Of a stretch of DNA of 64,000 bases, positions 15,989 through 49,173 are shown one piece after another; the first letter of the stretch is position 1; the number at the start of each line of letters is the position of its first letter. Both the position numbers and the translations under genes were made by a program. The stretch comes from Bugula neritina. Lineage: Eukaryota; Animalia; Bryozoa. Under the pieces are notes generated by a model. The model had not been told where the DNA came from, did no database searches, and worked only from the letters and a program-made list of their open reading frames with translations. The DNA lies in the NCBI GenBank assembly GCA_964035545.1, contig OZ037772.1:2666001-2730000 (forward strand), given 5' to 3'.

Positions 15989-16066
<78 letters not shown>
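15989..16066. repeat. (TA)n microsatellite (empty paralog of the ribozyme-element site)
   Basis: Left flank aatagtcac matches aatagtccc at ~55872. Confidence 0.95.
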
Positions 16067-16070
<4 letters not shown>

Positions 16071-18806: not shown

Positions 18807-18889
18807 AATTAAAGCAAAAGGAATAGAGAAATGAGTAGTACAGCCAACTAAGTCTGCCTCAATTCTGTTTCTACTAAAACCTGATTGCA

Positions 18890-19032
18890 TACAGTGTAAG
18901 TATACTGTGTAGGTACACAGCGTAAGTATACTGTGTAGATATATAGTGTAAGTATACTGTGTATGTACACAGTGTAAGTATGTAGTGTAGGTATATAGTG
19001 TAAGTATACTGCGTAGGTATAGAGTGTAAGTA
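18890..19032. repeat. 26-bp minisatellite (TACTGTGTAGGTATATAGTGTAAGTA)n, left half of the array that continues at 50236
   Basis: Same unit at 9077-9220 and 50236-50485. Confidence 0.9.
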
Positions 19033-19286
19033 GGGGTAACGGGGGCACAACGGTCATAGGGGTACAAAAAGCCGGCCAACTTGTGAGAGAACTTATAGAC
19101 TTGGAGTTGTGATTTTTTTTTCATAAAAAGATATTGGCATAATTGTTCAGCCTTTGTAGTTTCAACACTTGCGGAACATACGTGTTGAAAAGGCAAGTAA
19201 AAAACTGTTTTTACCTACTTTTTGTAAATTTTTTAGGATGTCGTTAAAGCTTTATAACTTTTTACACTCAAAGGCTATATTTTACT
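19033..19286 (-). mobile_element. First half (right end) of a split, inverted GGGGTAAC-TIR transposon
   Basis: Reverse complement of ~8813-9076 with a small 8-bp deletion; ends at ATTTTACT (19279-19286). Confidence 0.9.
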
Positions 19287-20035
19287 CAGTATATATTTTC
19301 CTAGAATGTTGTTTAGAGACATAAAAAAACTGCCTATGCACAACATACTTTGCATCTGTTTAGTATCTCGTAATTAGACATAAAAAAATCAAAGCCAATT
19401 ATAAGGCAAAAGACCATAATACTGTACTATCATTGGATAGTTCTTCATCAATAAACAGGTAGTCGCCAGTGGTGGATATGAACCCCTCCTAGATGTTTCT
19501 CGTACTTCTTCCTCAAAAAACATTTTCATTAAGCCAAAAAGAAATAACAATACACTTTTTTAGTTGACACTTTTTAATTTCTGACTGATATTTCACCTTA
19601 TTTCCAATTATAATTAACTTTTAACCGGCACTTTTCTTTGTAGTAATTCCTACCCTTTAGACTGTGTACTTTGAAATGAGTCTGTTTTACTCGTTACATA
19701 AAGTATAGTTGCACTGGCTACAGGTTGACACAAAAGCAAGCCTATCTTGATAAAATCATGAGCAAATGTAGAAACTACCGAGGAGTTTGTTCCTCATAAT
19801 TAGAAATTGACAAATTATTTTTAATCCGTTTAAAAGCATCTGCACAGAGAGAAATATTAGTGTTAGAGTGAACATAAGCTGACAACTAAAACCTCTCGTT
19901 TTTTGGATCCCTAAATTGACCAGCAGTGAATAGAAATTAGTGTCAGGTACTGTTCACAGTGAATAGTATGTTAGATCAATGTTGATATAAAGAGTTGTGA
20001 AGTTGATTCTTTGTATTTATCACAATGAGCCAAAT

Positions 20036-20310
20036 TATGTTCAATGGTGATCTTATATATGTTCAATGGTGAGCTTATATATTTTCAATGGTGATCTTAT
20101 GTATGCTCAATAGTGATATTATATATGTTTAATAGTGATCTTATTTATGTTCAATAGTGATATTATATATATTCAATGATGATCTTATTTATGCTCAATA
20201 GTGATATTATATATGTTTAATGATGATCTTATTTCTGTTCAATGATGATCTTAGATATGCTCAATGCTGGACTAAGTTATATTCAAAGCTGAACTTATAA
20301 ATGTTCCATG
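20036..20310. repeat. 22-bp minisatellite (TCAATGGTGATCTTATATATGT)n
   Basis: About 12 diverging tandem copies. Confidence 0.9.
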
Positions 20311-23300
20311 CTGCTCTAATTTTCGTTGGAAATAAGCTTCTGCAAAAATTATTACTGATCACTTTGAACTAACTTGTCATAACTTCTAACCAGTATGAGA
20401 GTATAGTAATGTGGATTTTATTGTATATGATAGTTGAATATAAGAAATGCAACAAAAAAATAACTTCTAAAGATTAAAATAAGAAAAGAGAAACATGAAA
20501 ATAAACATTTGCAGAGTTTTTCTACGACTGTAAATTCAGTTAACTTTTCTCAATATTTGCAGAACTGCCTAAGACCATAGTGTGTGTCGTTACATTCTTG
20601 CTCTGTAGTGTAGCGATAACCAAGCAGTTGTGGTGTGTAATGGTTAGCACACCTGTGTGCAAGTCCGAGGTCCGTGATAGTAACCCAAGTACGGGAGGGG
20701 GGAGGGGGAAGTTTTATAACTAATTCCAGCAGTTAGTAAAGTGTGGTAGTACTCCAAGAGGAGTTGAGTGGCCAGGGAAGCCTGAAGAAGTAGTATAAAA
20801 AGGGCAGCTGGGTTCTTGAGAAGTGGGTGAGGTGTAGTGTCGAGAGCACCCAGTGACGCTTGTAATGTAGTGGTGAGTGCGCCTGCTTGCAGGCTGAAGG
20901 TCTCAGCATGATTCAAAGTTTTGTAGCGGTCAAATTCTTTTTTGTGCTCCTATTTAGCATCTTTGAGTGCATGGTCTTAAAAAATGTTATGGGATCTACA
21001 ACAAAAGATAAAAGTTGGGTAATATTTAAACTGTATTAGTATGAACAGTAAACATTTGGTTAAGATATACAATCACAAGCAGCTTATAAATTAAGTTCAA
21101 CTTTGAAAAAGCTGAAGTCTAAGGCCAAAACTAATAGTATCAATGATGTTAGCTATGAATCTTTCAGCATATTTTCAGCACCACCGTACCAATCGTTTGG
21201 TTATGAATAACCATACAGGCTTTGGCAAACTTATGATCATTATGTTGCAAAGTGTTTGGGTTAGTTTGAGCTTATCAAAATTTAGTAACAATTTTGGCCA
21301 TCATTTTATTTTACTTCTTGCTTAATTACAAATGCAAGAGCTGTTGGGCATAATTAGTTTAGTTAATAGAAGCTTCTCTGCATTGAAATTAATTCAAAAT
21401 GTCAGTGAACCACAATTTAAGCTAGAGTCAGCATTTTATATGGACCCCTCATATCGAGATAACAGATATTGATAAATTTCAGTATGTCTATAAATTAAAA
21501 AACAAATAACGTACTACCAAGAAAAATATTGCTACTTAAACATGTTTTTATATTTAATTGTGCTGTGCAAAGATAAATAAAAGAATAAACTGGTAGCACG
21601 GAAGTTAAAAAAAATTTTTGCCAACTCACCACTAATATTGGCATTTTGGTACTTGGCTATAAAACAAGAAGCTAGCTTGGCAGCTGCTTAAGGCTAATAA
21701 CTACTTGTAGGCTGCTAAACTGCATTATTAACAATATGAATACTTCTACAATGGGGGGGGGGGAATTCAAATTAATGAATTTAGCACAAATTGCTAGAAG
21801 GTGAAGTGGAAATAAAACCTACATTTTTTGAAAATATATTGTTGCAGGAAAACTTGTATCAAATTAATATAGGAATAGAGTAGTTTGGGAAATATCAGTT
21901 AATGTGGTCTCTTAAAAGTTATAGTTGCACAAATTCAATTATCTGTCTACAGCAATAGTCATACTGTCATTGTGATTGTGATATAAAATCAAAATGACAA
22001 CGTTAAGCAAATGATTGAGCTTACCTTTTGCTGCAATGACAACTTCAGTTTCTAACTCTGAAAGAAAGTGATCATCTTCTATCTCTGAGAGGTAGCTGCA
22101 ATCTTCACCCATGTGATGAAATGATTCAATGTTTTCCATGTTGTGAGGTTGTTTGGAAGCACAAATTCACTGAATCTCAAAGCACAACCTCTTAGTCTGA
22201 GCCTCTGGTGTTCACTATGCCGGCAGAATATTTCTTCTGTCAATAGCCGTAAATGAAAACTATGTGCTGTTATGTAACAACCTTTGTTTTGCTCTTTCGA
22301 TGCTTGGTAAGCCAGTTTCTTGCCTTTGAATTATAATTTAAATATTTCCTTACTATAGCTCTGTTATGCAACATCTTCTTTTGTTCCACCAGGTAGTTTA
22401 CAAAAGTTTACACAAGGCTTTTGAAGTGGTTCACCTGATCCACAATTGACTATTCAGTAGCTTGTTTCATTGTTAATTTTAAGCTTCTTGTTTGAAACAC
22501 ATTTGCTGATAACTGAGTACATTGGAGTTTAATGGTGCATCTCCCTGATTTCTCTTTTACACACATTTTAAATTAGTTGGCTTTCCTTTCCATGAATGAA
22601 AAATACTAGTAAAGCCTAAACTACCCATGCAAGAGATATTGTGCAGTTGAAATTTTTTGTTGATAAATATAACTTAAGTCTTTGATAAACGGAGTGGGGC
22701 AATATTTAATAGTAGTCTGGTAACAAGCTATTTGAAAATGTCTTGGGTTCAAAAAAATTTCGAAATCATAAACAGCTAGTAGGTTGAAGGAGTTTCATTC
22801 CACTTATATGCTCCCCAGTTAGGTTGTATTTTTTGTTTTGGTACTAAGTATTATATATCTATATACCCTTATATAACTTTCATATCAATTGCTAAACATA
22901 AAATAACCATTAATATGATATATTTGCAATAATATTTAAATTTTTCCAAATTTGTGTTGAAAAAAAAGCATTAACTGCATTAATAATATCATTTTTTCAA
23001 AAAACAAAAAATATAGAAAATGCAAAATTAATAGGTTTATGCAAAGCAAAAAAATTTATTTGTGTGCCAATTATAAAACGCAATTGACTCAAATTTATTT
23101 AAATGCACATATATTTCAATAGTATTTAAATAAATTGCACGTAAAATGTATAAATAGCATCTAACTGGGAAGCACCAATCGAAATGACCCAAATGTAGGG
23201 TTCAACTCTATCCTAGCTTCCTATAAAGGTTTGTGATCATCATTAGTGCACATGTGAACGAATAATGTTGTTAGGTGAACAACTGCCGATTGTTCCATAA

Positions 23301-26300
23301 TTCTTATGTAAATAAAATTTTGCTTGAACATATGTAGTTGTAGCATTGATCTCACTTTCTGCTCCTATCAATTACTGTTTAGCTTCATTAAGACCTAGGG
23401 ATGATAATTACGTAATACTTGTGAAAAGTAGCGTTGACTTAACAACTACGTGGTTTCAGAGCTACTACAAAATATTTTTCAGCTTACACTAATCAGATTA
23501 ATTTTCAATTTCATCAAAATAAGTGCAGGTCTAACAACTATTAGAGGTGTGGTGCAGGCTATACCGACAATAAAAGGCTCTTTGAACAACTTTAGTGCAA
23601 GCACTGCACTAATATTTCTCTCTGTGTGGTTAGGGAAGCATATGCCGTGTTCATTTTGTTATTCTAGCATTAACAATAACAGAATGCAATAATTATAAGT
23701 TTATGAAAGTAATTTGTTTTCTTTCTAATTACAAATATAATATTTTAGTATATATTGTAAATTTATAAGGCTTGCATTAGGAATAACGCAGCTAAAACAT
23801 CATTTTCCTTAAAGTCTTAAAAATATATAAGTATAACATAATACACTATGCCAATAAACTTATTAAAGTACCAAGCAAGCTTAGCTAGTTTAAAAAAAAT
23901 TACGCTAGGTAAATTCCCATTATTTATAGAATGCTTGCTGATATTAGCTTTTGATGTAATTAAAGTAAATTATTATTTATCTTTCTAGCTAAGGATTTCT
24001 TGCCGTAAGTTTTGCTTTTATGCAAATGTCGTAACAAACGAGTTAAATTTTTATAGCACATAAAAATGTAATCTATAAGTCGAAGATATTTAAACTTAGC
24101 CATTAACCCATTTTAATTAGCAATGTAGCCTAAATATAATACAATACAAAATATATACCAGTATATATAATATATTTTTACCATATGCTGTTAATTACAG
24201 TATTTGTAAAACAAATTTTATGCTCAATAATTAAATGCAACAAATATTTATAAAATACTAATAATGTTGAATAAATAAATTCAATAATTCCTTTTCTATT
24301 CAAATGGCTGCATAATTTCTTGCAAGGTTGTATAAAGGAGTTGTGGCCTACAACTTATTATGTGTTCAATTGCCACATATGTCTTAGGAAGAAGAAAACT
24401 CCCCAAAAATTCTTAGTTTGAAAATTCTAGTATAATTAAAATCACTTAATATATGTCTTTGAAATGCATTTTGCCACTCTGCAAAATTGCAGGAACAAAT
24501 ATTGCATGAAGTAATAAATGATTTATGAAGTAATTAACAAACCAATGTAAAAACTGTTGTTGTATATAGAACACAACAGATTGATTTTCTTCAATTTCCA
24601 CATCAAATCTATATATTCAGTTATATCTAACCAATGCTAATAAACTAAACATGCATGCATACAAATATTTGCATCATATGCAAGTAATATTAGCTAATTA
24701 GCAACTATAGCATTTTTTTCATTATCTTTATTGCTTGCATATGTCTAAGTATTATTAAAATAAGGTTTTTATTTGCAACTTTGCACCACAAATTACATAA
24801 AATCTAAAAACTTGAGTTGTGACATAGGGCTACCTATACACAAATAGACCTTCATAAAACTCTCAATGATTTTATTCAACTCATGTATGCAAAAGTTTTG
24901 CTTTAAAACAATTCTTCTAAACCACTCAAAAGGGGAATTATTACAAAAACAGCTTCTCATATATAATTTTTCCCCAGATTAATTTTTTTCCTGTATTTAA
25001 ACTAACTTAGCAAGTGAAGATTGTGATATCACTCAGGTAATCACATACATATTATTCATAGCTGTAATACTTTAGCAATGAATAGATCATGTTTAATTTC
25101 CACTTTACCTAGCAGTTTTTCAGAATTATAGAGCTATGTATATCGTGAAATTGGAATAGCCTAATAGTTTTACATGTGTTTATAGCTAGACAAATTAACT
25201 TAAAAAACTTACAATAATTAGATGATATTTGCATTCTTTTGAAGGTTATGGTGAAGCTACTGCAAAACTGGCCATTAGTTTAGCATAATATGCAATGCCA
25301 CGCAAAAGCATGCCAAACAAGCAATGTTTATTTACCTTACCAGTGCAATTTTATCACCTTAAACACAAAAGCAAGTATAAAATACACATCCATATTAGAT
25401 TAACTGTCAAGTTAAAAAAAGACAACATATATTCATGAGCTGGTTCTGTTTGCACAAGTACAATTTAGACCAGCTTATAATTTAGATTGCCACAAAAATA
25501 TGACGTAAAATATGTCTTTAATCACTATTTTGATATTCACTGGTTGAAGATATTTTTTATATCCTAATATGTAAATATTGTACATAAATCTTAAAAATTA
25601 ACTAGGTGAATAAGGAAAACTGCTAATTTTATGAAACTGTTATGTTAATAAAGACAATGGCTATCAACAAATCCCACCAGACCACAAACTAATTGTAAAT
25701 ACTAAAGCAATTATATAGTGCTATGTGTTGATCTAGCCTAGTCAATACACCACAAAGATGTATTATGACATACCACATTTTATGTACTGGGTTACCACTT
25801 ATTCTAATGGGTATTTGTTTAAACTGTTATATACAGCTTTTTGCACTACCAATATACAAGCCAGTTGTTATTCTGTCACTTTTTATCTACATCTCTTTTT
25901 AATGCCAGTTACTTGTTAGCTTCAGTACAAACAGCTAAACATTCTACTCTACAGCCAATCTTACTGTTAACTCTTGTTTAACAATATTACAAGAATCTAA
26001 AAATTTGAGTGTGTTTTAAGTATAATATTCTATCATTATAACTTTTAAATGAAACAATAATATGATAAATGCATTATAACTTTCTGAAAAGTTTTTTTGC
26101 AAAGTATATGTTTTTGGAAAATAGTTTTACAACATTTGCTAGGAGCATTATATTTATTCCTATCTAAAATAATTTTGTTTGAACTGCTATGTTTGTAATC
26201 ATGTAATCAGAAGTAAAGCATCAGTAAAATGAGTATAAGTAGAAGCTTGACAGCTACATTAGGCATTGCTACATAGTACATAAATATATGGTCGTATTAA

Positions 26301-27890
26301 ATACTTAGCTGCATTCACAGATAAATGCATGGCTTGGAATTACAATACCATGAATACATTATTTATTTAGCTGGGTAACTATACAATTATGCCAAAGTGA
26401 AAAGCTTTTGGTTATTAATGCCTGAAATGTCTAACAATCTACTTGGGAGACCACCTTGTTGTTACAGAGTGAATGAGTTATTTGTTTGGCATTTGGATGA
26501 TGGCACAAAGAAAGGCTATTTGGTTTGTTACTTGAGACTAGTAGCAAACTGCTACAGTCATAGCATCTTAGAAGATTTTGCATCACTTGCTAGAATTGTA
26601 CATTATTTTAATGTAGCTATTGAAATTAATATCGCACTGAAAACACAGTATTGCAAAATCTTAAGCTGTACATAATTATATTATGCATCAAAAAGTACTT
26701 CTGCTATTCGACTATCCCAGGTTTATTTTAAACTAGCACTGCCAAAGTGCCTTGACTCTATTACACTGTTTACTAGCTAATTTTGTTCTTCTCAATAGTG
26801 AAATAGATCTATTGCAAGAAATTAATGACTAGATATAACAATAATGATTTTTAGGCAAGACTTTTGCATCTATATTGCTCATCTGCTAGCTTGAAATACC
26901 CCTCTCCTTGGACTAATCTCAGGCTTTTCATTGTTGTTTAAACAGTTTTTAAACTCCTATTTCAATAAACCATTACCAACACTGCCTGCATGTATTAATA
27001 TTCATTAGTGCCATCAATGCACTGTGGAGACAGCACCTGATGTTCTGTATATTACATTATAGTACAGAGATACTAAATCCAAAACATCTAAAATAATTGA
27101 TGCTTCTACCAGATTTTCAGCACACCTATAATATGTATTCCTGTAGTAAATATTAATAAGATGTTTTAACTGATAGTTTTTATGCCATTATAATAGTTTG
27201 ATACTATAACTACAACTTGAAACTCTTTAACCAGCACATTGGTTAGTAATATTGCTTCTTGATATTTAATTGCTGGTTCACAAACTATCAATAATAGGGA
27301 GGCATATCAAAACTTGACTGCATTCATAATATGATTTTAATGCTAGGTAATGACTAAGCATGTCTGGCTGATATGAGGTGACTATTTTGTACACTGTTTA
27401 ACAACATCAGCTTTTTGGGTTCATTTTAAGCATCTGCAAATCTGTATTATACATAATTACTGTTAGGGCCAATTAATTAAATTGTTAACCCTGAAATGCT
27501 TTTTACACTGTAATACTAAGTAGTAAAAGATATGTATATATATATATAAACTGATTGTAATTTATACATAACATTGTACATTTAAAAAAAATCACAAAAT
27601 ACATAATTTATTAGCTAAATTTCAAGGCGTTTTGTAGGTAGTGGGTTAATGTCAATAAAATAGAATCCGGGAAGTTGAGTAGCTTTATTCAAGAGGAAGG
27701 CTCTCCAACAGTTCTACCAAAGCCTAAATAACATGTATAAAATAAAGGTTATATGCACAATTTTTTTTCCAAAACAGCCTGCAACTGTTTTGCTATTGCA
27801 TATGCCCTATGCCATTCATCAAGTAGAACAATTTTAACCAGGATATCTAGAAAAGTTGACACAAGGGCTTTATAAACTATGTAACAGTAA

Positions 27891-28233
27891 GCCTAGGGCC
27901 ACACTGTGCGTATTTTCGCATGCGAAAATTAAAATCACAAGTAGCAAAGGTGTCCACTGTAGCGTCAGTGATGCGTGATAAATAAAGCTTTCATTTTTAA
28001 ATCGCACTAGCTTTCAATTAAACGCAATTTACTGGAATGTAGCACTAAATAAAGAAATTGGACACGCTGAATAGCTACCAGCCAATTAGGTGACGACGAC
28101 AGAGACGATTCGCACTTGCGTTGAAAATGCAGAGCGACAAGTGCGAGGGTTTTCTCAACGCGCACAGTGAACACCTTTGCTACTTGTGATTTCAATTTTC
28201 GCATGCGAAAATACGCACCGTGTGGCCCTAGGC
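27891..28233. mobile_element. Second copy of the GCCTAGGGCC Harbinger-type MITE
   Basis: Same TIRs as 9770-10148; lacks one arm of the internal hairpin; flanks TAA and TTA. Confidence 0.92.
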
Positions 28234-28459
28234 TTAAACTGTGAGTAGAAATTAATTGACACTAATGAATAATGCTTTAGGTGCTGGCAACAACCATAAA
28301 AGAAAAGTTATATAACAAACAAATAGAAAAAGCACTAAACAAATCAACAGCATTATATACAATTGGGGCACATACATGAAAACAGCAGCTAGTGTCATTT
28401 TCTTAAGACAGCACTATTTTAGGTATAAATTTAAGAAGTATTAGAAAATGCAGAAATTT

Positions 28460-28880
28460 ACTGCAATTGATTCATTTTATTTAAGTTAGTACATACTGAA
28501 GATCTCAAGTTTTTGCTAATGAACATGAGTTTTGGCCCGAAACTAAAAAAATATCAATAAATACACCTAAATAATCAAGGCTCTTTTTAATTTTCTTTGA
28601 TTTCCTATGCTTTTTTCTAATTACAGCAACTTCTGACTGGGGATTGCCACGGTTAGTTTGTAACAGTAGGCAATCCAAATGAAATGAATAAATAGGAAAA
28701 AACATGAGAAATCATGCAAAATTAAGAAGAACCTTGATTATTTAGGTGTATTTCTTGATGTCTCACTAATTTTAAGCAAAAAGCATTGTTCATTAGCAGC
28801 TAAAATGTAAAAATGGCTAAAAACTGCAGATTTCCAGTGTGTACTAAATTAAATAAAAGGACTCAATCACCTTTGCAACA
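28460..28880. mobile_element. Old palindromic (fold-back) MITE
   Basis: Arms ~28460-28625 and ~28690-28880 are diverged reverse complements (e.g. AATACACCTAAATAATCAAGG / CCTTGATTATTTAGGTGTATT). Confidence 0.7.
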
Positions 28881-30924: not shown

Positions 30925-33828
30925 TAATATGATCCATTAAAATAGAACTAATAAAGCCAACGACGTTAATGGTATGTCTAACTAAACATGGCATGTCTCG
31001 TCTGGCAGTGGGTATGTGGAGGGCCAGGCAACCTACGGCCGTCAACCCGTTAATGGCACAACTAGAAGAAGATACTCAAGAGAAGATAACAAAGTTGTCA
31101 TGAAATGCTGCTTCAAAAGTACACCCAAATTGAGAGGTTATAGAAAAACAATGTATGAGCTCTGTAGACCCGAATTAAAGAATTATTTAAAAAGGATGTG
31201 CAAACGCTGGAAAACAGAGGAGAGTTTAACATCAGCGAATAGAGACTAGCGGATTAAGCAAGAACTATGAAGAAACACAAGCATTTTATGGAAGAAGAAC
31301 TCCATAAGATTGAAGAAGGAACCTTGCAAGAACTAGGCACATCAATTGGTGAAGAAGATAATGAAGAGCTAAATTTGCAAATAGAGGATGTTATAGTACA
31401 ACATGAGATAGCATATAAATCAGCCATGAGAATTTTAAGAGTACCTAGTTCAGAGGTAGAAAAAGTGTTAGTAGAAAAATTATAAATGAGCATAACAAAC
31501 TATCTAATGATCGACCAACACTAAGAGCCCTTAGGCACATTGAGAGGGTCAAATTACTACAGGCAGTAAAACAGAATAATGATGTGCTAAACTGTGTTGA
31601 GATTATTAATACCATTGAGCTTAATAACACCACCATGGCTTGTGCGAAAAATAGTAACAGAACAAGTGTGTAACAAAAAGGAAAAAGAAAAACTGACAAT
31701 GTACAAGTATGGAAAATACGACTGCAGAAGAAATAAAAAGAAATTAGATCAGACTTAAGTAAAATAGCAGAGTGAAAAAGTAGAGCTTACAATGATTCAT
31801 CGAGAAGAATGGTTGAAGAAAAATATAGGATAAAGAACAAAGAGTGTGGTGTAGTGATTGAAAAACTGAAGCAAACCTGAGAGCTGTAAGCCAGAAGATA
31901 AACAGATATACAGAATGAGTTGATCAATATAATCAGAACACAATGTTTACAATGATAAGCGCTTTTATCAAGAATTACGAGGAAATGAATGTACATTTAA
32001 AGAGGCACCTGACAAGGAAATCAAAAGCATTCTGATAAAATATATAATTGGAGCATATGTAAAGACAAGGAAATTAGATCTTAGAAACGATGCAAACAAC
32101 TGGAATAGCAATTAATGTCATAAGGTTGATAAGAAAAAGCATGAAACCTGGAAAACACAACTGAAATACCTGGAAGAAAAGATAGGAGAAATAAAGATCA
32201 AACTAAGAATTTTCCAAGGAGACTCTTTATCTCTATCCCTTTTCTCCAACTACCGATTCGCATGACAGAAGCGGCTCAATGATGCAAATTTCGACGAGAC
32301 AGAAAACAAACCATCTCCTATATGTGGATGACCTGAAGGTAAATAGGAAATCGAAGTCAGAACTGGAAGCTTTGGTAAACACTGCCGGGATCTTCACAAG
32401 GAATATAGAAATGAAATTTGGATTAAAAAATGTGCCACACTGGTTATGAGAAAGGGAAAGAAAATCAAGGACACAGGAATCAGTTTGCCTGATGAACAGG
32501 TAATCAAAGATCTGGGTGAGAAGCCGTATAAATATCTAGGAGTTCTTGAGATTGATAGAATACAAATATATGAAATGAAAAATAAGATCAGGGAGTACTA
32601 CAAACAAATAAGAAAAGTTCTAGATTCAAAACTGAATGGTGAGGACACAATCAAAGCAATAAACACATGGGCAGTAACAGCAGTGCATTACACAGCTAGA
32701 ATACTTGACTGAACTGTTTCATGAGCTAAAAAATATGGACTGAAAGACAAGGAAGCTAATGACAACAAACCGTGCACCCTATCCGAGAGCAGATGTAGGC
32801 AGGCTGTATTTTAGCAGAAGGGAAGGCGGTAGAAGAATGTTGTCAACTGAAAAATGCATAAAGATTGAAAACTGCAGCATGTCAGACTACATAAATATAA
32901 CATAGACTGATAGAAACACCACACTGATTACCTTCCTAAAAGACAGAACAGCGGTAGAACTAAATAATGATAAAGTGATAGAAAGAACTGATGAGTGTAA
33001 AGAAAAGTTTCACGTGGTCAATACATCAAAATGGTGGAAGACATGAAAGCATTTTCCTGGAACTGGTTGAAGTATGGTTGGCTGAAAAAGGAAACAGAAG
33101 GACTGCTGACAGCTGCGCAAGATCAACTATTCACTACTAGAAATTATAAAGTGGCTGTGATGAGAGAACAGGGTAGCAAGAAGTGTGGAATGTGTAACGC
33201 AAGAGACAAAACTTCGATGCACGTATTGAGTGAGTTTGAGAAGGTAGCAGAAGGAGAATATAAGAAAAAACACAACCTTTTGGCATTGATAATTTCAATA
33301 GTAGTTGTGTGAACTTCGTGGGTTTCAGAAAAGTAAGAATTGGTACGGCCATCAAGCAGAATAAGTACTGGAAAATGATAATGTGAAAACCTTGTAAGAT
33401 TTTAACATACACACTGACGTAGTCATCAAAGTTAGGAGACCCGATATATTAGTAGTTGACAAGCATAATGCTGAAACAACGATAATTGATATTACAGTCC
33501 CTGTTAACTACAGAGTAAAAGAAAAAAATTCGAAAAGTTAGGAAAATATCAGAATTTAGCACTAGAATAAACCCGCCTTTGGAAAACATCAAAAAAGTCA
33601 TCCCGTTGTAACTGGAGCCTTTGGAGCTTTATACAAGATTGTAGACTGGCTGACACTACTTGGAGTAGCTGAAAACAAATGCTCATTAATTCAGCAGACA
33701 CCCTTACTAGGATCAGGATAAGCTCACATCCTGAGGAAAGTTCTATCCATTTCAGCCTAGTATAACTAGGCCAATGGTAAAAGGTTACACCAGCTAAAAA
33801 ACTACGGTCAATCAACAATAATAATAAT
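30925..33828 (+). mobile_element. Degenerate RLE-type non-LTR retrotransposon (R4/Dong-like), internally deleted
   Basis: RRRYSREDNKVVMKC N-terminus; RT motifs IFQGDSLS (~32209), HLLYVDDLK (~32312), YKYLGVLE, SKLNG..TIKAINTWAV; WLK.GWLKKETEGLLTAAQDQ; CxxC...H knuckle (~33184); RRPDILVVDK / IIDITVP / EKLGKY endonuclease; (AAT)n on both sides; many stops. Confidence 0.9.
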
Positions 33829-34884: not shown

Positions 34885-35030
34885 CCTATTACTACTACCA
34901 CTGATACTAGTACTACAACTAGTACTAGTACTGCTACTAGTACTAGTACTAGTACTAGTACTACTACTACTACTAATAGTACTGTTACTACTACTACTAC
35001 TAGTACTACTACTAGGTCTACTACTGTTCC
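34885..35030. repeat. (TAC/TAG)n trinucleotide repeat
   Basis: ctactagtactagtactactactac run. Confidence 0.9.
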
Positions 35031-39602: not shown

Positions 39603-39918
39603 CTCTCTCACTCCTCTCTCTGTCTCTTTCTCCCACACCTTCCACTCAACCTCTCTCTCTTTCTCCCCCTCTCTCCCACCCTCCCTCTCTCCCACCCTCC
39701 CTCTCTCCCACCCTCCCTCTCTCGCACCCTCTGTCTCTCCCACCTTCTCTCTCTCCCACTCTCCGTCTCTCCCACCTTCTCTCTCCTAACCTTTCTCTCT
39801 TCCCTTTTCCACTATCTCTCTGACTCTCTCCCTTTCTCTCTTCTACCCCATCTCTCTTCCATCCTCTCTCCTAACCTTTCTCTCCCACCCCCCCTCTCCC
39901 ACTCTCTTTCTCTCTCTA
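39603..39918. repeat. CT-rich polypyrimidine low-complexity tract
   Basis: Loose (CTCTCTCCCACCCTCC)n. Confidence 0.9.
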
Positions 39919-42900
39919 GTTTGCATGGCTTTACCCAATTTTGGTTTATTTTTTTATTTTGTTTCAGAGTATCCAAAAGGAAAGCTAAAATTTATTTAAT
40001 ATATATTATACCAACTTGAGCTTTACATATAATATCAAATAAATGCTGTGTTTTGTTAAAACAATGTTTGCAACTTTGTAGTATATTCAAATTCATAATT
40101 TATTTGTAGAGTCACACAACAAGACACTACTCTGACACACTCACAAGTTGCCACTGATCCAGCAGTATAGATGATTGTTTTCTCCACTGGCTATGCTGTC
40201 ACGCTTTACTGTTGTGGTGTTTGAAACAAACCAATTGTTTGCCTACGCAGATTAGGGTGAGAAAAAAAGTGAGAAATGAAAGCTGTTTTTAATACCAACT
40301 ACACTTAGTTTTTATTGAATGAAAAACAAAGTGAAATCATTAGTTATCCGTTAAATGACTAAATCATTGTTTATAAAGATGAAACACAAATAATCTTATA
40401 ATATGCTAATGAAATTTGGCTTTCAAATAGCTTTTTTCTGTATATTTGTTGAGGAAGTTTATCTTCAACAAAACTTCGTAGCTGTTGAATATGTGGAGAG
40501 TATTTTATATTGCATAAATTTATAGAGTAAAAGGTTCTCATCAAACTTTTACAACTTAGCTCATCGACGGTTTAAAAGTGTGAGTCACCCTTCACACTAG
40601 AGTTTTATAAAGTTTTAATGAATGTGCAGTATTTTATAAAATATTGTGTGTCTCGTAAATTTAGCTATTTCTACCTTTTCAGTAAGATTGGAGTAAACAC
40701 ACCTCAAAATTCACATCTGGTATCACATTGATTTATCGCAAGTCAAAGTACACCTACTAACTCTTCCTTCCTTAATACCTGCTTGCTTTTGCACTTCTAC
40801 TCATTTCATATACCTAACATTTCTCTTGCAGATGAATTACATCTTTTAAGTTGTAAAAGCCTTAAATAGCATGAAATTAATGAGGTTTAAACCGTGGCCA
40901 CACTAACTATTGATGCGTTTATTGATGGGTCAAATTACACGAAAATATTGTCTCTTTCTTTTTAGTTTCACCTAAAGTATTACATACTATCGATGGAGGC
41001 TTTGCTGAAGTTTTTGGGTGATGATTTGTCAATAATTTTCCAGAGAAGATGATGCCTCGGTGGCTGGCATCATTATGCAGTTTCCAAATTTCTTTCGGCT
41101 TTGCTCTAGTGAAAATGTTGGAAAACAATCAACAAAAAGGTTTGTACCATAAACGAAGTTATTGTGTGCGTGTTGTCAAAGCATAAAGTGTGCTGGAAAT
41201 TTTTAGGTTTCTGTTGAGATGCGTTTTTGCTTTTCCTGCATGAAAAAAGTTCCAGTTTCAGTTAATATCACTAGCAGAGTGCCCACCTATATTTTAAATC
41301 ATATTGATGCATAAGTTCTTTTTGTAATATTAAAAGTATAACTTGCTTAATTGCTATTCAATGCCCTTTGAAGTTTCCAACTGTAATTAATTAGTTGATT
41401 TGGCAGCATAGTATCGATGATTGATGAAGGCAGCCGATATAATTATAAGCATAAATATCTATATCTACATGAAGATGTCATTCCCAATGATTGTTATTCT
41501 GAAATCAGCTGATTAAGTTATCACAAACTAAACATTTTGACCAGCGGCTTGCAATGCAACTCGGTGAAATTTCAGACCTAGATAAATTGAATTTCTTACT
41601 GAAAATCGTGAAGGTATTAAAGTTTAAAGTGAAAGTTTAAACATCGTAGGCATCCAGGTTATTTTGATAAAATCAATTACTGTTAATTGAAAGATCATAC
41701 TTTTTTAGTTACATTCACAAAATATATAAAAAAAATCTCAACTCAATATACCAGAAAAAATGAATTAAAATATATGTGCTAATAGCACTGATATTGACGT
41801 GACCGTGGCGCATGAAAAATCTGAAAGAAGAGTTGTCTTCTTTTTTTCTATATTATTATATAGAGCTTGTCGTGAAAATAAAGATTTAAAAAAAAAATAT
41901 TGTGACCCTCTGGTAACTTCCAGAATTTAGAAAATTGGCTCATATATTTCCTTTCATGTGGACAACAGCTCACTTTTTTTTAAATTTATTTTGAAGCTCT
42001 TTTCGTAAAAAATATTTAAAAGTAAAAAATCCAAAATTTTTACAAATTGGTTCGGGGCTTGATGTGAAAGGCATTTAGACGAAGATGTCAAGGTCACCAT
42101 TAATAAATTAATTTTATCACAATACTGCACGGAAAGTTAATGAAGTGAGCTGAAAATTAGGTTGCTAGCATATTGATATACATTATATTGATTGTTGCAG
42201 TATTATTTTTTAAACTTGTTTTATCAGTTATGTTTAACTTCTTCATAAAGCTGCTGTTAGACTAAGAGTAAGACATAATATTAGCAACAATGATAATAAT
42301 AATAATATTAAATTCACGAAGAAGTATCACTATGACTATGAGTATGACTATCACTATGAGTGTCGTAATCGTATAAATTAATTATGAGTATGAGTATCAC
42401 TATGACATTAACTCAAACAGTGATTGACTAATACTGTGAATATGACTATGCATAACTCAATGAGAATATCAATATGAATATGGCTTCTAATTCTTGTAAC
42501 TTTTTACTATGACGATGCTGATAGTGATAATCAGTGCCAGCCCAAGTCTCATACTCATAGTGATACTATTACTATTGTTTATTAGTATTAATAATTAGTA
42601 TTACTATTAGTACAACTACTAGTATTACTCATAGTCATAGTGATAGTTCTGTTAATGTTGCAGATGATAGTTTTAGAAGTTCTACTTCTACTTTTATAGT
42701 ACGCTAGATTCAGATTGTATATGTTGAACTCTACTCATTTTTTACTACTAATGCTAATAGTAATAGTAATAATGATTGTAGTTGTTATAATGATAGTAAT
42801 ACAAATGGTAATAATAACTATTTAAATTTGATAATTTATGTTTTACAACAGCATTATCACTTATCAATTACATTGGTTCATAATATGCTTATTTTAATTT

Positions 42901-45900
42901 TGCTTTGTGTGTTTTGTCATGTTATAAAATTAAGTTCGTATGGTTATTTAATGAACTAGAGAACTAGCCAAATGTTATGTAACAGTTGCAATAATTTACT
43001 ATAAACTCAGTGAAATTTAAAACCTAATTGATATTACTATGACATTGATTGTACAGAGGTAGCTAAAATATACATTAAATTACCAATAATTTTAACTCGC
43101 CAATACACTATGAGTAGAACAATCAAATGCAATGATAGAAAATTAATTAGTCATAGCAGCCCGTTGCTTGAAGAACATCGAGCTACAGGTCTAAAATTAT
43201 GTAGTTTTGTGATCCATTACATAACAAAATAATTTTTTTCAAACTGGTTTAATACTTTTATTATGAACACGCTTATCAAAGTAACATGTTTGTAATGTAT
43301 ATTCTATTAAAAAAGCAATCACATCAGGTTTTCAATTTGTATGTTGTACAATGTTTATTATGGTGACAAGTTACTAAATCATATGGTTCAGCTTTGTAAA
43401 GTAAAGCTGATAAAATAAATACAAGTATGTGATTGTTTTACTGCTATATATTAAATTTAAATGAGTTGAATAATATCCTAGTGCAGTGAATTAGATATTT
43501 TTTAGCTTTGGTACACCTGTTTGTTATAGGCTAACATTCCACCAATAGAAGAATGGTGCAAGTAGAAGAAATTTCAGGCGCAGAAAGCTAAGGAGCAGTC
43601 AGAATGCTGCCAGAGTTGTGAAGAGGCACTTAAAAAAAGCTGAATTTCAATAATGACATGACATTCGTAACATATCACCCTGGTGTATTTGAACTGACAT
43701 GGCCAGCAGAGTTCTCGAAGTCACATTCAACAGCTATTTACATCATCATGGTTAGCTTAAATTTAATTCCTTTATCAGTCTCTAATATATAGTTTGATAT
43801 CTGCTGTAAATTCGCTTAAGGAGCATACACATAACCAAAACTGAGTTACACTATAGTATTTGTTCTTGAATATATTTACCAAGATAAGTAGATAATTTGC
43901 TAATTCATTAACAGTAAAATTATAATGATACAACAATTTTTCTTTTAGATGATTCAATCAATAACACAAGACACTACAACATGGTTTTGCAGTTATAGAG
44001 TATTAATTTTCTGGCTCTTTCCAAATCTTCATAGAAGGCAAAGAAAACCACCGTCAGCTTGCCTTTATAACTGAGTGCAAGCTTCTTCCACCTACAGATG
44101 ATGATAAACAATTTGCTGATGTGGAACTTTCTAATTTTGTTTACAATGAAGATAGATTATAGGACATTATTCTTTATGTAAAGATTGTCAAGTTTTGTTA
44201 TAATTAAGAACAGTTTTAGTTTCAATTAATCAGTTCAACATTATGGACATCATTGCACAAACATTTTAATCTTTACTACCTACAAAGGTATCTGATGGAC
44301 TACTTGAAAATACAAAACTATGCTCCAGATACACAATGAACTGACCAGCAAAGTTAAAATGAGTTGGAGATGTAGAACATAATATCTTGTTCAAGGCTTT
44401 TCCCTGCTGTTGGAACCTTCTACTTTAGAACACTGAATTGAACAAACATATGTAGATATATAAAACTTTGCAAACAATAATAATGTGAAATTAGTTGCTA
44501 AGTATCACATTGCTAATAAATACAGCGTTGTGTAATGTTTTATTTAATTTTTTTTTGAGCCATTTGATCTATAGGCCCGCATAGTATTTACTATATTATA
44601 ACTAATAAATGGCAGACACATTATGTCAGACCAGTCTCCATTTAAATAGAATAGTGTAGGCTATCAAATTTGTAGAAGTAAAAAACCGCATTCTTATTGA
44701 GTAAAATACTTACCTTTTTTTTCATGATGCCTCTACTGCTAAAAGGAGAAGTTTTTATCAATACAGCTCCATCAATCTGTATCCCGATGAAGCTAGTAGT
44801 TTAGGAACATTTGTGGCGGGGAGTGTAGGCTGAGCTGCAGTATAGGAAGAACCCCAACATATGTAATCTATTCAGCACATTATATGTATTGTAGAAATTT
44901 AATCAAAAAAGAATTTAGAAAATGCTTTATGAAGCATGAACAAAGTAAAAATTAATGCTGGTGAAAGTAATATTATTACACCCATTAGAGTTACTAGCAG
45001 CTATAGCATTAAAATTATGTATTTTTATAAAATGTGTCTAATTTATGCTACAAAGTTATTACTGCCAAAGGTTACAAAATTTACCAGTCGCATTCATGCA
45101 GCTGATGGAGAATAACTAACCTTCACATGCAATAAATACAATTAGTAGCTCAATCTAAAACTAATGTTATGAGTATAAGTTATAGTTATTCTAAGGAATA
45201 ATTGCAAAAAAAGTTACTTAGAGGAATTTAACTCTTATTATAATGTAATTATCTTCCAAGATATATTACAACATCACTACTTGGATGCATACAATGTCAT
45301 TTTTATATTGGCATCAACATAATTTTCAATAATTTCCAATCTATTAACTTGAGCATTATGATTGTGATTATTTTATAAATAAGGCGATGATTAGGCACTA
45401 TGGGTATTTTGGTTCAATTTATTTATAGCTGTAACAGGCAGAGTTGTAAATATAATGGATATATCAAAATTCCAATGGGTATAGTACTCTAACACAACAT
45501 TGATACTAATAATTGTAGTCACTTACTCTTAGAGTTAGTGAATGATGATACAGTCATAACAATTTGAATATCAATCAGCATTAGAGATAGACTGACTGCT
45601 TTATAATATTATAGTTATTATGTCAAATTGAATTTATTCACTATAACTAAAAAAATTATGATTATAATTATAAATTAAAATAATTTAAATATTATATAAT
45701 ATATTGATAATTATTGGAATCATAATTATATTTATTGTTATGATCATTATGATTATAATTATTTAATATTATCTTTATGTTTGTATTTAAAGTTGTTCCT
45801 TAAATCTAAAGTTGTTTAAGTTTTATAAATTTATTATAATTATATTACTGTATAAGTATTGCTATTAGTATTAGTATAATTAAATTATTATAATTTATAT

Positions 45901-48900
45901 TTTATTATTTATATTTATTTTACTTTTTATTTTAAGACCAACAGTTCAAATTAATACTTGTGTCGTTTGCTTTATATTATAACTTACAAGTATAACTATT
46001 AACATAATAATATTAGATTTGCTATTAGTATTACTATGAATATAAATATTTATGTTAATATAGCTATCGGTATAACTTATACTTATAGTTATAACTAATA
46101 TTACAAGTATTACTATTAGTATTACTGTATTAGTTTCGAAACTGATCCTGCTCCGTAACATTAACATACTGATACTGTCATATGATTATCATTATGACTA
46201 ATAATGGTATTAATAAATATAACCATTGAATATTATTAATAATAGTTCACCAATACTAATAGGCGATAGTCATAGACTTAGAGTGAGAGTCATAGAGCTA
46301 GACATAGACTAGTGATACTCATACTGATAGTCATACTCATAGTGATACTGTGATTCACTGATTCAATTACAAATTTTAAAACTTGGTTTTACGTAGACAA
46401 CTACTAACCTATAGTTCATCACAAAACGGTTGAAAATCATCATTTACTGCATATTTAAGAGTAATTTTCTGGTAGTGTGGTCGACATGATAATTGAAATT
46501 AAAATAGGAAAAATAATTATTTTGTGATTTACAGCAAGTTACAAACTAGCGAAATGGAATAGTCCATTTGAAAATAGTCAAATTAGTTACCTTTCTTGAT
46601 GTTGCGTAGCTAACGTTAGTTATTAGTAGCCGCCCGAAGAGTAACATTCATGTGATTTGAGCTACGAATAACGAGAATCTGTGACAAACCCGCTTCTTAA
46701 TAACTTTACGCGATATAAACTCACGCTACAATAGGGCTATTTTGCCATCCCTACGTCAGAATAGGACACGGAGGGCAAGCTCGCGGGCAAGTCTGGGCAA
46801 GTCTAAGACACCTAATATGACCACTTTTACTTGCACTTTTGTAGTGTTTTCGTATAAGAAATTGAATAAAATGCTGATAAAACAGTTGAAAAGCATGCAA
46901 ACTTTTGCTCAAATGTAATAAATAACCTGGATGCTTACGGCCTTTAAAGGGTCATCTCTCTGCGAATTTTAATAGCATGGTGCCAATTAGACTTGAAAAA
47001 ATTTCAAGGCACTACAAAGCACTAAGCCCATTCTTACAAGTAGTTTCAAAGTGCACTGGAATTTCAGTTTACTTGTCATTGTATAGAATCCTGATCTACA
47101 CTATATAGCATTCACTATTGCCTGCTTCTTCTAAGCATCTATAATGTATTAACTACAGTTTGCTTTGAGAAGTGAATTTCTACTTGGTATTTTTTCCTTA
47201 TCGTTCTGTTGTTTGCCAGTAGTCTTAATTTAATGGATTTTCCCTTTTCAAAAGTGGTTGTGACAGTCAAAACACATCATGCAGCCTGCAACTACACAAT
47301 CAGTCAGTAATTTCTTCCATTAAAGTAGCTCTTCTGGTTACTCTTGCTCACCTAAAAGCCTGAGCCTCATTCAAATTGCAATTTTTTAGAGTTGTTAGTT
47401 TTTCATGCAGTCTTTCATTTTTTTTTTTTGTTAGGCACAAAATTAGTATTCACTAGACCTAATCTTTCATCTGCATGTATGCCTATTGTTTGTTCATTAA
47501 AGAAAAACCTCTGCTGAATATTGAACTAATAATGAAAATAAATTCCCTAAACTAAAAGTAGCAGTGTGATTTTGGTATTACAATTAGTTGTTAGCATAGA
47601 GTCAAGTTATTGACAGGAATTTTCAAATTGAAATGAATGAATTTCATTGTAAGTCAGCAAGATTTAGTCTAAGTAAACATAGCATTACATCGTGTTTTAT
47701 TTAGCATTTGCAGAAGGCAACATATATTTTAAGGATTATTGTAAACTTAAATGTAATTTTAAGTACTTTCCATGTTTGTTATTGTAGATGGTCTTGTTCT
47801 TTAGGATGGATGTGACAACTCCTTGTGTCAAGCTTAACTGATTGACTACTGAATCCCAATCATATGTTTTGCCAAAAAATGTGAAAATGGAGTGCATGTC
47901 TACTTTATTTGAGAAAATATTAAAAATACTTTTGAAACTTCATCTAGCCAAACAATACAACAGTTTGATTTTATTAAAAAATATCATTTGCACAAAAATG
48001 TATTATGTAATCGAACAATTTCTAGAAAAAAAGTGCTTTCCTCCAGTTTTGCTAATGAACTACATTTTTCATTATATGCTTGTCTTTATAATTTTATTAA
48101 TTGTTTTTTCTGGTGAGTCAATTAAAGTCAATTCAACCTAGAAAAGTCTGAATTTCAGACTTAATTTCAAGCTAGAATATTCACATTTTTAGGTCTGCGT
48201 TTGCAAACATTGTTGTGTGACTTTACTTTTTATATTTTTTGAAATAAATATCTTTTTAGCTTGTGCCTATTCATGATTAGAATAGTATAATAATATTTAA
48301 CTTTTCTTCAATTTCAATAGATGAAAATGTTGATCAGTTGGAGTATTCAGTTTAGCTGAATTTTACTTGCTTCTGCGAAAACAATCTTTTGGAGTTGTCT
48401 GCCCTCTCTTTAGGTAATTTTTTTGACCTATGGTCAACGCAATAATTATAACTTTTTAAAGATGCTCGTGAACCTAACAATATAGCATAACTATCAAACC
48501 ACATTATTCAATATCTGCATAAAATTTAGCCGATAAGCTGCCACCCAATGAGCTTGAAAAGATATTAGAATTCTAGCTCAGTGCTGCCATTAATGTAGAT
48601 ATTTATAATGATATAAAGCCAAAACTCATTTATATAATGATATAAAGCCAAAACTCATTATTGCATGAAATTATCTAACCATTCCTGACAAAGAATCGAG
48701 ATAATAACTCCAAAGTTGGTCAGTTAAAACCACAGCAATAATACTTTAATCATTATAATTGTCAGGTTTAATTTTATACCAAGCCCCAATAAGTACATAT
48801 AACTATGACAACACAGCCTAAGCACCTCCAATGCAAGAAATTTAGTATTGTGGTGCTGCAAATCCTCCAGTTACAAATGAGTAGAGCTTTCATGATTATT

Positions 48901-49173
48901 GGTCTACCATAATGTTTATTTAGTTTTAAGGACTAGCATAAATGCTATTATATGCGGGAGGTATTTGAAAAGCTTCCAACTCCATCTTCAACTACGGGCT
49001 ATTATAATTATGCCGATAAACGAGATACTACACTCAGGCTGCCCTGTTATAGTACTATGATTGGCTACTGCAAAATTTTTGCCGATAGACAACATTTAAT
49101 TATGATGTAATGTATCTCGTATTGGTACATAAGTGTTATGTCTGAGGACGAGATACTGTGAAATTATGCCCTG

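Follow-up and report, generated by a model that had tools for sequence, protein, structure and literature searches.

With a probability of roughly 85 %, the insertion at positions 19287 to 49173 of the window (the whole stretch of 64,000 nucleotides from Bugula neritina analysed here) is a non-autonomous DNA transposon of the cut-and-paste type and belongs to a young family of giant elements (20.4 kb) present in many copies. It is 29,887 bp long, lies on the forward strand and is one member of a young family of about 70-80 elements sharing a canonical length of 20.4 kb, the canonical unit being interrupted here by three nested insertions. At this position the first-pass annotation had proposed a DNA transposon of very large size, non-autonomous, ending in CAG...CTG and flanked by 8-bp target duplications; this proposal was supported.

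Insertion site and genomic family

The giant element was found inserted in a 1.3-kb TA-duplicating transposon of reverse orientation, one half of which lies at 19033-19286 and the second at 49174-50235. This splitting had already been suspected, and removal of 19287-49181 indeed rejoined the halves end to end. The joined sequence (19033-19286 and 49182-50235; 1,308 bp) aligned from 1 to 1308 with positions 1305 to 1 of an intact, forward-oriented paralogue located at 7772-9076, with 90.9 % identity, and this paralogue provided the "empty site" reference. The split element, whose terminal repeats are GGGGTAACGGGGGCACAACGG, was confirmed to be set within a 26-bp minisatellite with a TA duplication. 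The 8-mer ATTTTACT, described by the first-pass annotation as duplicated at the breakpoints, occurred on both sides of the 29,887-bp insert (19279-19286 and 49174-49181) and as a single copy in 7772-9076, as expected of a target-site duplication. The left junction reads ...aaaggctatATTTTACT/CAGTATATATTTTCC and the right one GAAATTATGCCCTG/ATTTTACTaatgttg; the positions and sequences given earlier for both breakpoints were borne out. Position 19286/19287 was bridged by none of the contigs from public read data, which derive from short reads only and are hence uninformative on this junction.

Genome-wide, 84 left and 82 right family ends were detected, all of them on C1-C9, while reversed-pattern controls returned none. 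Our own pairing of left-end and right-end coordinates yielded ~73 same-strand left/right pairs, 30 of which spanned 20.2-20.8 kb. In the flanks examined (30 left ends, 28 right ends), no kinship was apparent from the first base beyond CAG/CTG onwards. Both flanks were in hand for 12 pairs: identical, copy-specific 8-mers bordered ten of these, one more matched at seven of eight positions, and discordant duplications were encountered in one pair (C6:1621754-1643197). Positions 2-6 of the duplications were 83-91 % A/T. The pairing of the same termini elsewhere, with different 8-bp duplications and a common interior, had been put forward as a check on the initial reading and was clearly observed; such a recurrence of both termini (84 and 82 against 0), among unrelated flanks and with duplications of their own, is far beyond chance.

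The family alignment combined three copies, namely canonical copy A (G000:C8:1008054-1028521; 20,468 bp), copy B and that of the window, with 58 end loci and with two contigs from metagenomes. The window copy aligned with copy A in five collinear blocks of ~98 % identity, and a common internal order was displayed by copy A, copy B and the two independent metagenome contigs. The same family sequence was present in two independent metagenome assemblies and in four studies. Divergence among copies was low (1.1 % in pairwise mean; 0.6 % from the consensus) and the distance of the window copy to the consensus was similar to that of the other copies. Altogether, the family accounted for ~1.7 Mb of the 216-Mb genome (~0.8 %). 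Copy B (28.3 kb) was composed of the canonical unit and of a nested LTR retroelement, which supplies its extra 7.8 kb; the idea that a longer copy might be the autonomous form was consequently rejected for copy B, the one long copy read, and hAT, KDZ or P domain matches were found in none of the long family copies.

Ends, interior and nested elements

The left terminus CAGTATATATTTTC (19287-19300, forward strand) was the same in 81 copies, with flanks diverging directly outside CAG. The right terminus GAAATTATGCCCTG occupies 49160-49173 on the same strand, and its reverse complement matched the left terminus at 10 of 14 bases. A two-part motif, AGTATCTCGT-N5-AGACATAA, was confined to the neighbourhood of the two ends. 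It appeared as AGTATCTCGT-AATTA-GACATAA at 19362-19383 on the forward strand (element positions 76-97) and, in reverse complement, as AGTATCTCGT-CCTCA-GACATAA at 49136-49157 (17-38 nt from the right end), and is a candidate transposase-binding site. Within the outermost 160 bp, four occurrences of the 8-mer CGAGATAC/GTATCTCG were counted, and AGACATAA was encountered three times at the ends; both were absent from the 19.6-kb interior. The palindromic pair GTATCTCG-N15-45-CGAGATAC was found at 74 places of the genome and, among the matches listed (100 of 148 strand matches), all corresponded to family right ends. Two variants of the ends were identified. A left-end variant with two mismatches, on C9, was a 119-bp solo end; a right-end variant formed a 6-copy family (C2:17533583, C2:24081493, C6:6338180, C7:12185067, C8:5802995 and C9:4809696) that resembled the giant over the final 24 nt of the right end alone, and no recognisable gene was detected in the 14 kb upstream of it. 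Several isolated matches were discarded: a right 14-mer at C8:4890166 was attributed to chance and adjoins a host LRR-Roc gene, left 14-mers at other places (126 against 30 in the control) were judged to be at chance level, and a facing pair of left 14-mers on C4 was part of a longer inverted repeat and not a terminus.

Within the canonical part of the window copy, positions 30986-33309 (forward strand) form a decayed reverse-transcriptase region with broken reading frames, the remnant of a non-LTR retrotransposon. A YVDD motif is located in 32207-32446, and homologues of a 121-aa frame at 32347-32709 contain PF00078 (E down to 1e-20), while the Pfam search of the reading-frame pieces of this region itself returned nothing. 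Across the 30 kb, none of the 169 reading-frame pieces of at least 45 aa displayed a credible Pfam match, a threshold that a transposase with exons shorter than 45 aa could escape; neither an Rfam family nor a tRNA was found in the element. The interior of the canonical unit was limited to the decayed reverse-transcriptase remnant and simple sequence, with no recognisable gene, and the "cargo" of the first-pass annotation was in this respect overstated.

The additional 9.4 kb of the window copy consist of three separate elements with their own ends, their own duplications and their own genome-wide families. The first (19840-23624; 3.8 kb), which is absent from canonical copies, has perfect terminal repeats of 18 bp (CAGAGAGAAATATTAGTG), and a 22-bp tandem array lies within it at 20036-20317. 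The element belongs to an independent repeat family (583 first-look candidates), relatives of which were present in other giant copies at different offsets and in opposite orientation; at position 19842, moreover, contigs of other runs continued as canonical sequence. The second, a miniature element of 345 bp (27891-28235), has a TA duplication and terminal repeats of 73 nt (AGCCTAGGGCCACAC...), and its inverted repeat is 96 % complementary. The third (41642-46942; 5.3 kb) is flanked by the 6-bp duplication TTTAAA and is likewise absent from canonical copies. It is a member of another independent family (1,027 first-look candidates), whose scored relatives were all situated outside copies of the giant, and it must be very recent since a twin at G000:C8:11557088-11562385 was 100 % identical. 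A single 30-kb move and growth in place by nested insertion had initially been opposed to each other. Each held in part: the 20.4-kb unit moved as one and the other 9.4 kb were acquired through three independent nested insertions, so that ~20 kb, not 30 kb, would have been displaced in one event.

Three other accounts of this structure were weighed. Transposition of the whole 29.9 kb here in one event, nested elements included, would be conceivable if some of these elements had already sat in the donor copy, and the window copy is as near to the family consensus as the others. This is nevertheless very improbable: the insertions were found at these positions in no other scored copy, the relatives of the first one inside other giants occupy other offsets in another orientation while contigs of other runs cross its site uninterrupted, and the third one has its scored relatives outside the family and an identical, hence very recent, twin. 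An assembly artefact or segmental duplications in place of transposition would be scarcely tenable. The copies at C7:14.86 Mb and C7:12.25 Mb do have the same left flank and 8-bp duplication (in the second copy, for the left flank only), which means that at least one duplication exists, and the window junction was bridged by no contig, only short-read contigs being available. The unrelated flanks with ten different perfect 8-bp duplications, the precise empty site obtained by restoring the host element, and the presence of the same sequence in two independent metagenome assemblies and four studies nevertheless argue for transposition. A further alternative concerns only the origin of the unit and is compatible with a giant non-autonomous transposon: the left and right ends of two smaller elements may have bracketed ~20 kb of genomic DNA, the block being amplified afterwards. 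Such an origin would suit an interior resembling ordinary junk DNA (the reverse-transcriptase remnant and simple repeats), the dissimilarity of the ends (10/14), the unequal distances at which their common motif lies (76 nt inside one end, 17 nt inside the other), and the 6-copy family whose likeness to the giant is limited to the final 24 nt of the right end. It was however considered doubtful, as the 19.6-kb interior of canonical copies contained neither end copies nor subterminal motifs, and neither an end-less source locus nor a small element bearing both ends was identified. Macrotransposons built from two separated ends are known from Ac/Ds in maize and from the foldback-flanked "transposing elements" of Drosophila. 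Like the giant, they consist of tens of kb of ordinary DNA moving as a unit between two transposon ends; they are however rare single events, whereas the giant was amplified to ~73 copies and is devoid of internal element ends. Because of this lack of internal ends, a composite, which the first-pass annotation had mentioned as an alternative, was not supported in the form of two complete smaller elements.

Superfamily affiliation

The hAT label initially given to the element was derived solely from the 8-bp duplication and the CAG...CTG ends and could not be proven. The terminal pattern of hAT elements is YARNG, which is matched by the right end (CAGGG) and not by the left one (CAGTA), the two ends agreeing at 10 of 14 bases, and the target sites of the giant did not display the hAT tendency nTnnnnAn. 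The hAT dimerisation domain (PF05699) had 14 matches in the genome, none of them inside family copies, and no hAT remnant was found in the element by tblastn or HMM. The search for a hAT transposase between paired ends that had been suggested thus revealed neither an enzyme nor a remnant in any copy. Near the left end, tblastn gave a weak match to a hAT protein (E 0.002), which was dismissed: it is interrupted by stop codons and gaps, the catalytic D is missing and HMM searches did not support it. The termini and the subterminal motif of the giant were absent from the stretches read of four hAT elements (L064, L071-L073), and the termini of L064, the only one of these with defined ends and the source of a 563-aa candidate hAT transposase, differed from those of the giant. 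Repbase assigns non-autonomous elements when their duplication has the same length as that of a classified element and their terminal positions 1-11 differ from it by no more than one mismatch (PMC4455052). Over these positions the giant matched L064 (CAGGGTTGGGG) at five of 11 and the P-like element described below (CAGGGATGTAG) at six of 11, in both cases with more mismatches than a rule of this type allows.

Non-autonomous hATs (Ds-type derivatives and hAT miniature elements) and large hAT-like cargo elements resemble the giant by their 8-bp duplications and CAG/CAGGG ends, by short imperfect terminal repeats and short subterminal repeats, by the lack of a transposase of their own and by precise insertion into other repeats. 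Non-autonomous hATs are however mostly shorter than 2 kb, whereas the giant is represented by ~73 complete young copies of 20.4 kb, with a left end (CAGTA) and target sites departing from the usual hAT patterns. From the cargo elements, among them ToxhAT (14 kb) of fungi pathogenic to wheat (PMC12506042), it also differs in having no protein-coding cargo.

A live, although unlikely, rival is that the family is a decayed or non-autonomous one of the KDZ/Zisupton type, moved by a KDZ transposase of the same genome. Zisupton elements generate 8-bp duplications and Kyakuja elements have CA..TG ends without inverted repeats (PMC12730594); the giant likewise duplicates 8 bp at its target, its CA...TG ends form a very weak inverted repeat, and it is very large. 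Zisupton genes are composed of many exons (PMC9297572), so that a decayed copy would be long and without open frames. The genome further contains KDZ genes with intact 451-aa frames, and, in our reading, a KDZ-plus-helicase element at C8:6195062 starts with CAGT and has AATATTTA on both flanks. Scoring of all 20 first-look candidates for PF18758 gave ten matches, however, none of which fell in the ~73 family copies; credible Pfam matches were absent from the reading-frame pieces of the giant, and no KDZ domain was found in or near any of its copies. The two C8 KDZ elements whose ends were read also displayed other terminal repeats (TGTGGTGGCTCGTGGAGCTAC and TAGGTGCAGWAATGGAGAT) and did not have the subterminal motif. 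Affiliation with the P-element superfamily, with mobilisation by the young P family (THAP9-like) that the genome contains, appeared quite improbable. P elements, like the giant, make 8-bp duplications and have non-equivalent ends. Eight near-identical P-type exon matches (PF12017) are indicative of a young family, and the ends of a 6.5-kb copy (L078:1110-7616; duplication ATCTTACT) start with CAGGG as does the right end of the giant. None of these eight matches lay inside family copies, however, and no P-like or THAP9-like protein remnant was found in the canonical unit. Past CAGGG the termini diverge (CAGGGATGTAGTGG against CAGGGCATAATTTC), the subterminal repeats of the P-type copy (GGCCATAC and CCATACG) are unlike AGTATCTCGT and AGACATAA, and no 10-mer is common to both, so that nothing terminal or subterminal is shared beyond these five bases.

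According to our own estimates, a hAT-like affiliation of the giant stands at about even odds, the KDZ/Zisupton type is an appreciable minority prospect, some other superfamily is rather improbable, and the P type still more so.

Proposed mobilisation and significance

Since the canonical unit harbors no recognisable gene, it would be a giant cut-and-paste element that is non-autonomous and mobilised in trans, probably by DDE-type chemistry. The search having yielded no autonomous partner, both the superfamily and this mode of mobilisation are what we infer here. A transposase encoded elsewhere would recognise the two non-identical ends, CAGTATATATTTTC... and ...GAAATTATGCCCTG, possibly by binding the subterminal motif AGTATCTCGT-N5-AGACATAA, and would excise the whole 20-kb segment. 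On reinsertion, a cut staggered by 8 bp would be made at an A/T-rich site, and its repair would generate the 8-bp duplication. The window copy would have landed in this manner in the 1.3-kb transposon, itself within the minisatellite, and the three unrelated transposons nested in it (3.8, 0.35 and 5.3 kb), which may have entered before or after its arrival at this site, bring it to 29.9 kb.

High-copy non-autonomous DNA transposons are normally tiny, and transposition efficiency usually drops with length. The family described here is a natural counter-example, with a gene-less element of 20.4 kb present in ~73 complete copies that are only ~1 % apart. It is conceivable, though rather unlikely, that the mover is a transposase outside the recognisable hAT, KDZ and P copies (highly diverged, many-exon or host-retained), for which the two-part motif replaces a true terminal inverted repeat and which operates essentially without length penalty. 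If this is true, it is through such an enzyme that a 20-kb segment devoid of genes could have reached ~73 copies. Identification of the transposase would provide an enzyme with a very high natural cargo capacity, together with the minimal sufficient end sequences; enzymes of this kind, namely piggyBac (PMC3239208) and Tol2 (reviewed in PMC8151067), serve as tools for the transfer of large gene cargoes. Within the genome itself, the giant family is a landing pad for other transposons and, as regards annotation, it accounts for a set of repeats, some of them inverted, that measure 20-50 kb and lie on C1-C8 of the assembly.

Insertion site and nested anatomy of the window copy

The 29,887-bp insert at 19287-49173 (+ strand) split a 1.3-kb TA-duplicating transposon, and both junctions read as the first-pass annotation had described them (...aaaggctatATTTTACT / CAGTATATATTTTCC at 19286/19287 on the left, GAAATTATGCCCTG / ATTTTACTaatgttg at 49173/49174 on the right). 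Joining 19033-19286 to 49182-50235 restored 1,308 bp that aligned over the full length, in reverse orientation, with the intact paralogue at 7772-9076 (90.9% identity), in which the 8-mer ATTTTACT occurs a single time. The split element displays GGGGTAACGGGGGCACAACGG as terminal repeats and is itself located, with a TA duplication, within a 26-bp minisatellite. The junctions, the rejoined host element and the minisatellite with its TA duplication thus give the nesting order: minisatellite, 1.3-kb element, 29,887-bp insert.

Comparison with a canonical copy of 20,468 bp (copy A, G000:C8:1008054-1028521, in the window's own assembly) revealed five collinear blocks of ~98% identity, broken by three segments specific to the window. 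Insertion 1 (19840-23624, 3.8 kb) is bounded by 18-bp perfect repeats CAGAGAGAAATATTAGTG and belongs to a family with 583 first-look candidates; insertion 2 (27891-28235, 345 bp) has 73-nt terminal repeats and a TA duplication; insertion 3 (41642-46942, 5.3 kb) is flanked by a 6-bp duplication, TTTAAA, and its family comprises 1,027 first-look candidates. Insertion 3 is without Pfam match and has a 100% identical twin at C8:11557088-11562385; with such a twin and more than 1,000 candidates, its unclassified family is very young and abundant. Relatives of insertion 1 were present in other giant copies at differing offsets and orientations and hence represent independent hits. Contigs from other sequencing runs, short ones being the only read evidence, read as uninterrupted canonical sequence across the insertion-1 site (contig sets X1 and X5, with loose ends at 19842; record 30 of set X7).

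In the window, insertion 1 is accompanied by four filler bases, a clear duplication being absent. Five of the 46 matches to this CAGAGAG-ended family lay within giant copies and at least eight lay within 0.3-5 kb of one, while giants make up only ~0.8% of the genome; both families may accumulate together where repeats are dense, or may prefer the same kind of target.

A second long copy (copy B, C6:3700020-3728275, loci L075-L077; 28,256 bp) consisted of the canonical unit enlarged by an LTR retroelement of 7.8 kb nested in it. The latter, at ~14,990-22,780 of that copy, is of Ty3/gypsy type, its long open frames covering protease, RVT_1, RNase H and integrase, plus a 549-aa frame that has no match in Pfam. 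Size variation is due to nesting in both of the long copies examined; therefore, the 20.4-kb unit moved and the other 9.4 kb of the window copy accreted in place. The earlier proposal, which left open whether ~30 kb moved at once or grew by nested insertion, holds in its second form for these 9.4 kb; the first gives way to the 20.4-kb unit delimited by the collinear blocks of copy A.

A young family of paired ends

Either terminal 300 bp of the insert gave 40 scored matches of 99-100% identity in the 216-Mb assembly (93 first-look candidates for the left, 85 for the right). Exact-pattern scans allowing up to two mismatches located 84 occurrences of the left 25-mer and 82 of the right 24-mer, all on contigs C1-C9, and the reversed-pattern controls for both were never encountered. 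Paired by hand from their coordinates, these ends formed ~73 same-strand left/right pairs of 11.0-52.4 kb, 30 of which measured 20.2-20.8 kb; together they amount to ~1.7 Mb, nested DNA included. Copies were clustered: 11 pairs, for instance, fall within C3:14.78-15.84 Mb and 19 within C6:0.4-6.5 Mb. Ends of the family were also mapped around C8:1.19-1.30 Mb.

At the 58 fetched end loci, flanks were unrelated from the first base outside CAG/CTG. The terminal sequences thus do not run on in other copies; had they done so, this would have refuted the proposal on the first-pass annotation's own terms. Among 12 pairs with both flanks, ten displayed identical copy-specific 8-mers, one matched at 7/8 and one was discordant. 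Three full copies and the 58 ends were read; mean pairwise divergence, measured over 550 bp at the left end and 1.8 kb at the right, was 1.1%, or 0.6% from the consensus, a lower bound since the best-scoring copies were used. Parts of the unit were present in runs of four studies (two of the runs bear the label 'symbiont metagenome'), and two metagenome contigs from other samples matched it in the same order over 18.7 kb and 15.9 kb, at 97-99%.

The 21.4-kb pair C6:1621754-1643197 (L017, L032) has unlike flanking 8-mers, CGTCATTC and ATATAACA, suggestive of a rearrangement or of recombination involving two copies. Copies at C7:14860517-14880962 (-) and C7:12251519-12271962 (+; left flank alone fetched), 2.6 Mb apart, have a common left flank and 8-bp duplication AAATTATG; this looks like a segmental duplication in inverted orientation that includes the element, or like a duplication arising in the assembly. 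The two metagenome contigs, of JGI samples 3300002729 and 3300003318 (L079, 18.6 kb; L080, 15.7 kb), consist almost entirely of the giant element; L079 begins with an inverted copy of its first 114 bp, probably an assembly fold-back.

Ends, content and candidate transposases

The termini form a weak repeat (CAGTATATATTTTC versus CAGGGCATAATTTC, 10 of 14 positions matching), and long inverted repeats, terminal or internal, were not found in the unit. The two-part motif AGTATCTCGT-N5-AGACATAA occurs at both ends and points inward at each, at a distance of 76 nt on the left and 17 nt on the right. The 8-mer CGAGATAC/GTATCTCG was found four times, each time no farther than 160 bp from an end, and is missing from the 19.6-kb interior; the interior likewise lacks AGACATAA, which the ends contain three times. 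The two-part motif is the best candidate transposase-binding site. Target sites are A/T-rich (83-91% at duplication positions 2-6), with T at -3 and A at +3; the hAT-like nTnnnnAn tendency was not seen.

Only one frame of at least 100 aa, of low complexity, was encountered in 30 kb. None of 169 stop-to-stop pieces of at least 45 aa, on both strands, displayed a credible Pfam match (best single E-values 0.0003-0.008, chance level for 169 tests), and no Rfam family or tRNA was found in the element. The A-rich stretch at 30.9-33.4 kb contains broken + strand frames with a YVDD motif, and homologues of its 121-aa frame are annotated with a reverse-transcriptase domain (E down to 1e-20); it reads as a decayed non-LTR retrotransposon, in agreement with the LINE proposed earlier. 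Simple repeats occupy 34890-35025 and 39645-39800.

Exon-level scans of the whole assembly yielded 14 hAT dimerisation-domain, 10 KDZ and eight near-identical P-element matches, none of them inside the ~73 giant intervals. Neither the termini nor the subterminal repeats of the giant were found in any transposase-bearing element with readable ends. A ~3-kb hAT (L064:478-3526; G000:C1:30459877-30462925) with an intact 563-aa frame has terminal repeat CAGGGTTGGGGT, 8-bp duplication ACCTACAC and dense subterminal repeats TAATTGTAATTG; at three further hAT loci the giant's termini and motif were absent. A 6.5-kb P-like element (L078:1110-7616; G000:C5:1104809-1111315) carries CAGGGATGTAGTGG as its terminal repeats of 14 bp, ATCTTACT as its 8-bp duplication and GGCCATAC as subterminal repeats; with eight near-identical PF12017 exon matches across the genome, the family appears young and possibly active. 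Two KDZ elements on C8 display terminal repeats TGTGGTGGCTCGTGGAGCTAC and TAGGTGCAGWAATGGAGAT. The transposase moving the giant family was thus not found among the hAT, KDZ and P elements examined.

The L064 hAT sits in a short tandem repeat, as an insertion, and two more PF05699 matches, on C3 and C5, have an equal score and the same 563-aa frame. A KDZ-plus-helicase element on C8 (L067/L068; G000:C8:6194900-6195250, 6210250-6210600) has inner repeats TAGGTGCAG(A/T)AATGGAGAT and apparently the 8-mer AATATTTA on both sides, which would be an 8-bp duplication as expected of Zisupton-type elements.

Six loci (C2:17533583, C2:24081493, C6:6338180, C7:12185067, C8:5802995 (L070, L074) and C9:4809696) end in CAGATACTGTAAAATTATGCCCTG and agree with the giant in the final 24 nt of its right end but nowhere else; at the C8 copy, 14 kb of upstream sequence contains neither a recognisable gene nor a left end. 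On C9, a solo 119-bp left end (L069, G000:C9:10388880-10392900, positions 42-176; 93% identical) carries TATTCCGT on both sides and has lost position 120 through the right terminus, flush with the duplication; it may well be what an aberrant excision or repair left behind. These relatives are uninformative on the mobilising enzyme.

Classification

Duplications of a fixed 8 bp, defined ends that recur in many copies amid unrelated DNA, exact empty sites and the lack of coding capacity indicate, with a probability of roughly 0.85, a non-autonomous cut-and-paste element mobilised in trans. The best guess for its superfamily is hAT, given that the duplication is 8 bp long, the ends read CAG/CAGGG and the subterminal repeats are short. 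The hAT label given previously thus stands as regards duplication and ends, but not as regards a partner, the left-end pattern, which is poor, or the target tendency. A serious rival is a KDZ/Zisupton-type element, as Zisupton also gives 8-bp duplications and its relative Kyakuja is without inverted repeats (PMC12730594); however, all KDZ matches lie outside giant intervals and the two C8 elements have different termini. P-type mobilisation is less likely, the L078 element differing in termini and subterminal repeats. Searches of the canonical unit with tblastn, phmmer and a small hAT profile detected no hAT or P protein remnant. The unit may have originated as a macrotransposon, or from an autonomous ancestor whose interior was replaced; the absence of internal ends excludes a composite made up of two complete smaller elements.

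Large cargo-bearing hAT-like elements are on record, such as the 14-kb ToxhAT (PMC12506042), and engineered transposons carry very large inserts (PMC3239208), which makes the present family notable but not revolutionary. Unlike ToxhAT with its cargo, the giant is gene-less at 20.4 kb. As a non-autonomous DNA transposon it is of a known kind, but it marks an unusual extreme: long, devoid of genes, present in ~73 complete young copies and repeatedly struck by other transposons.
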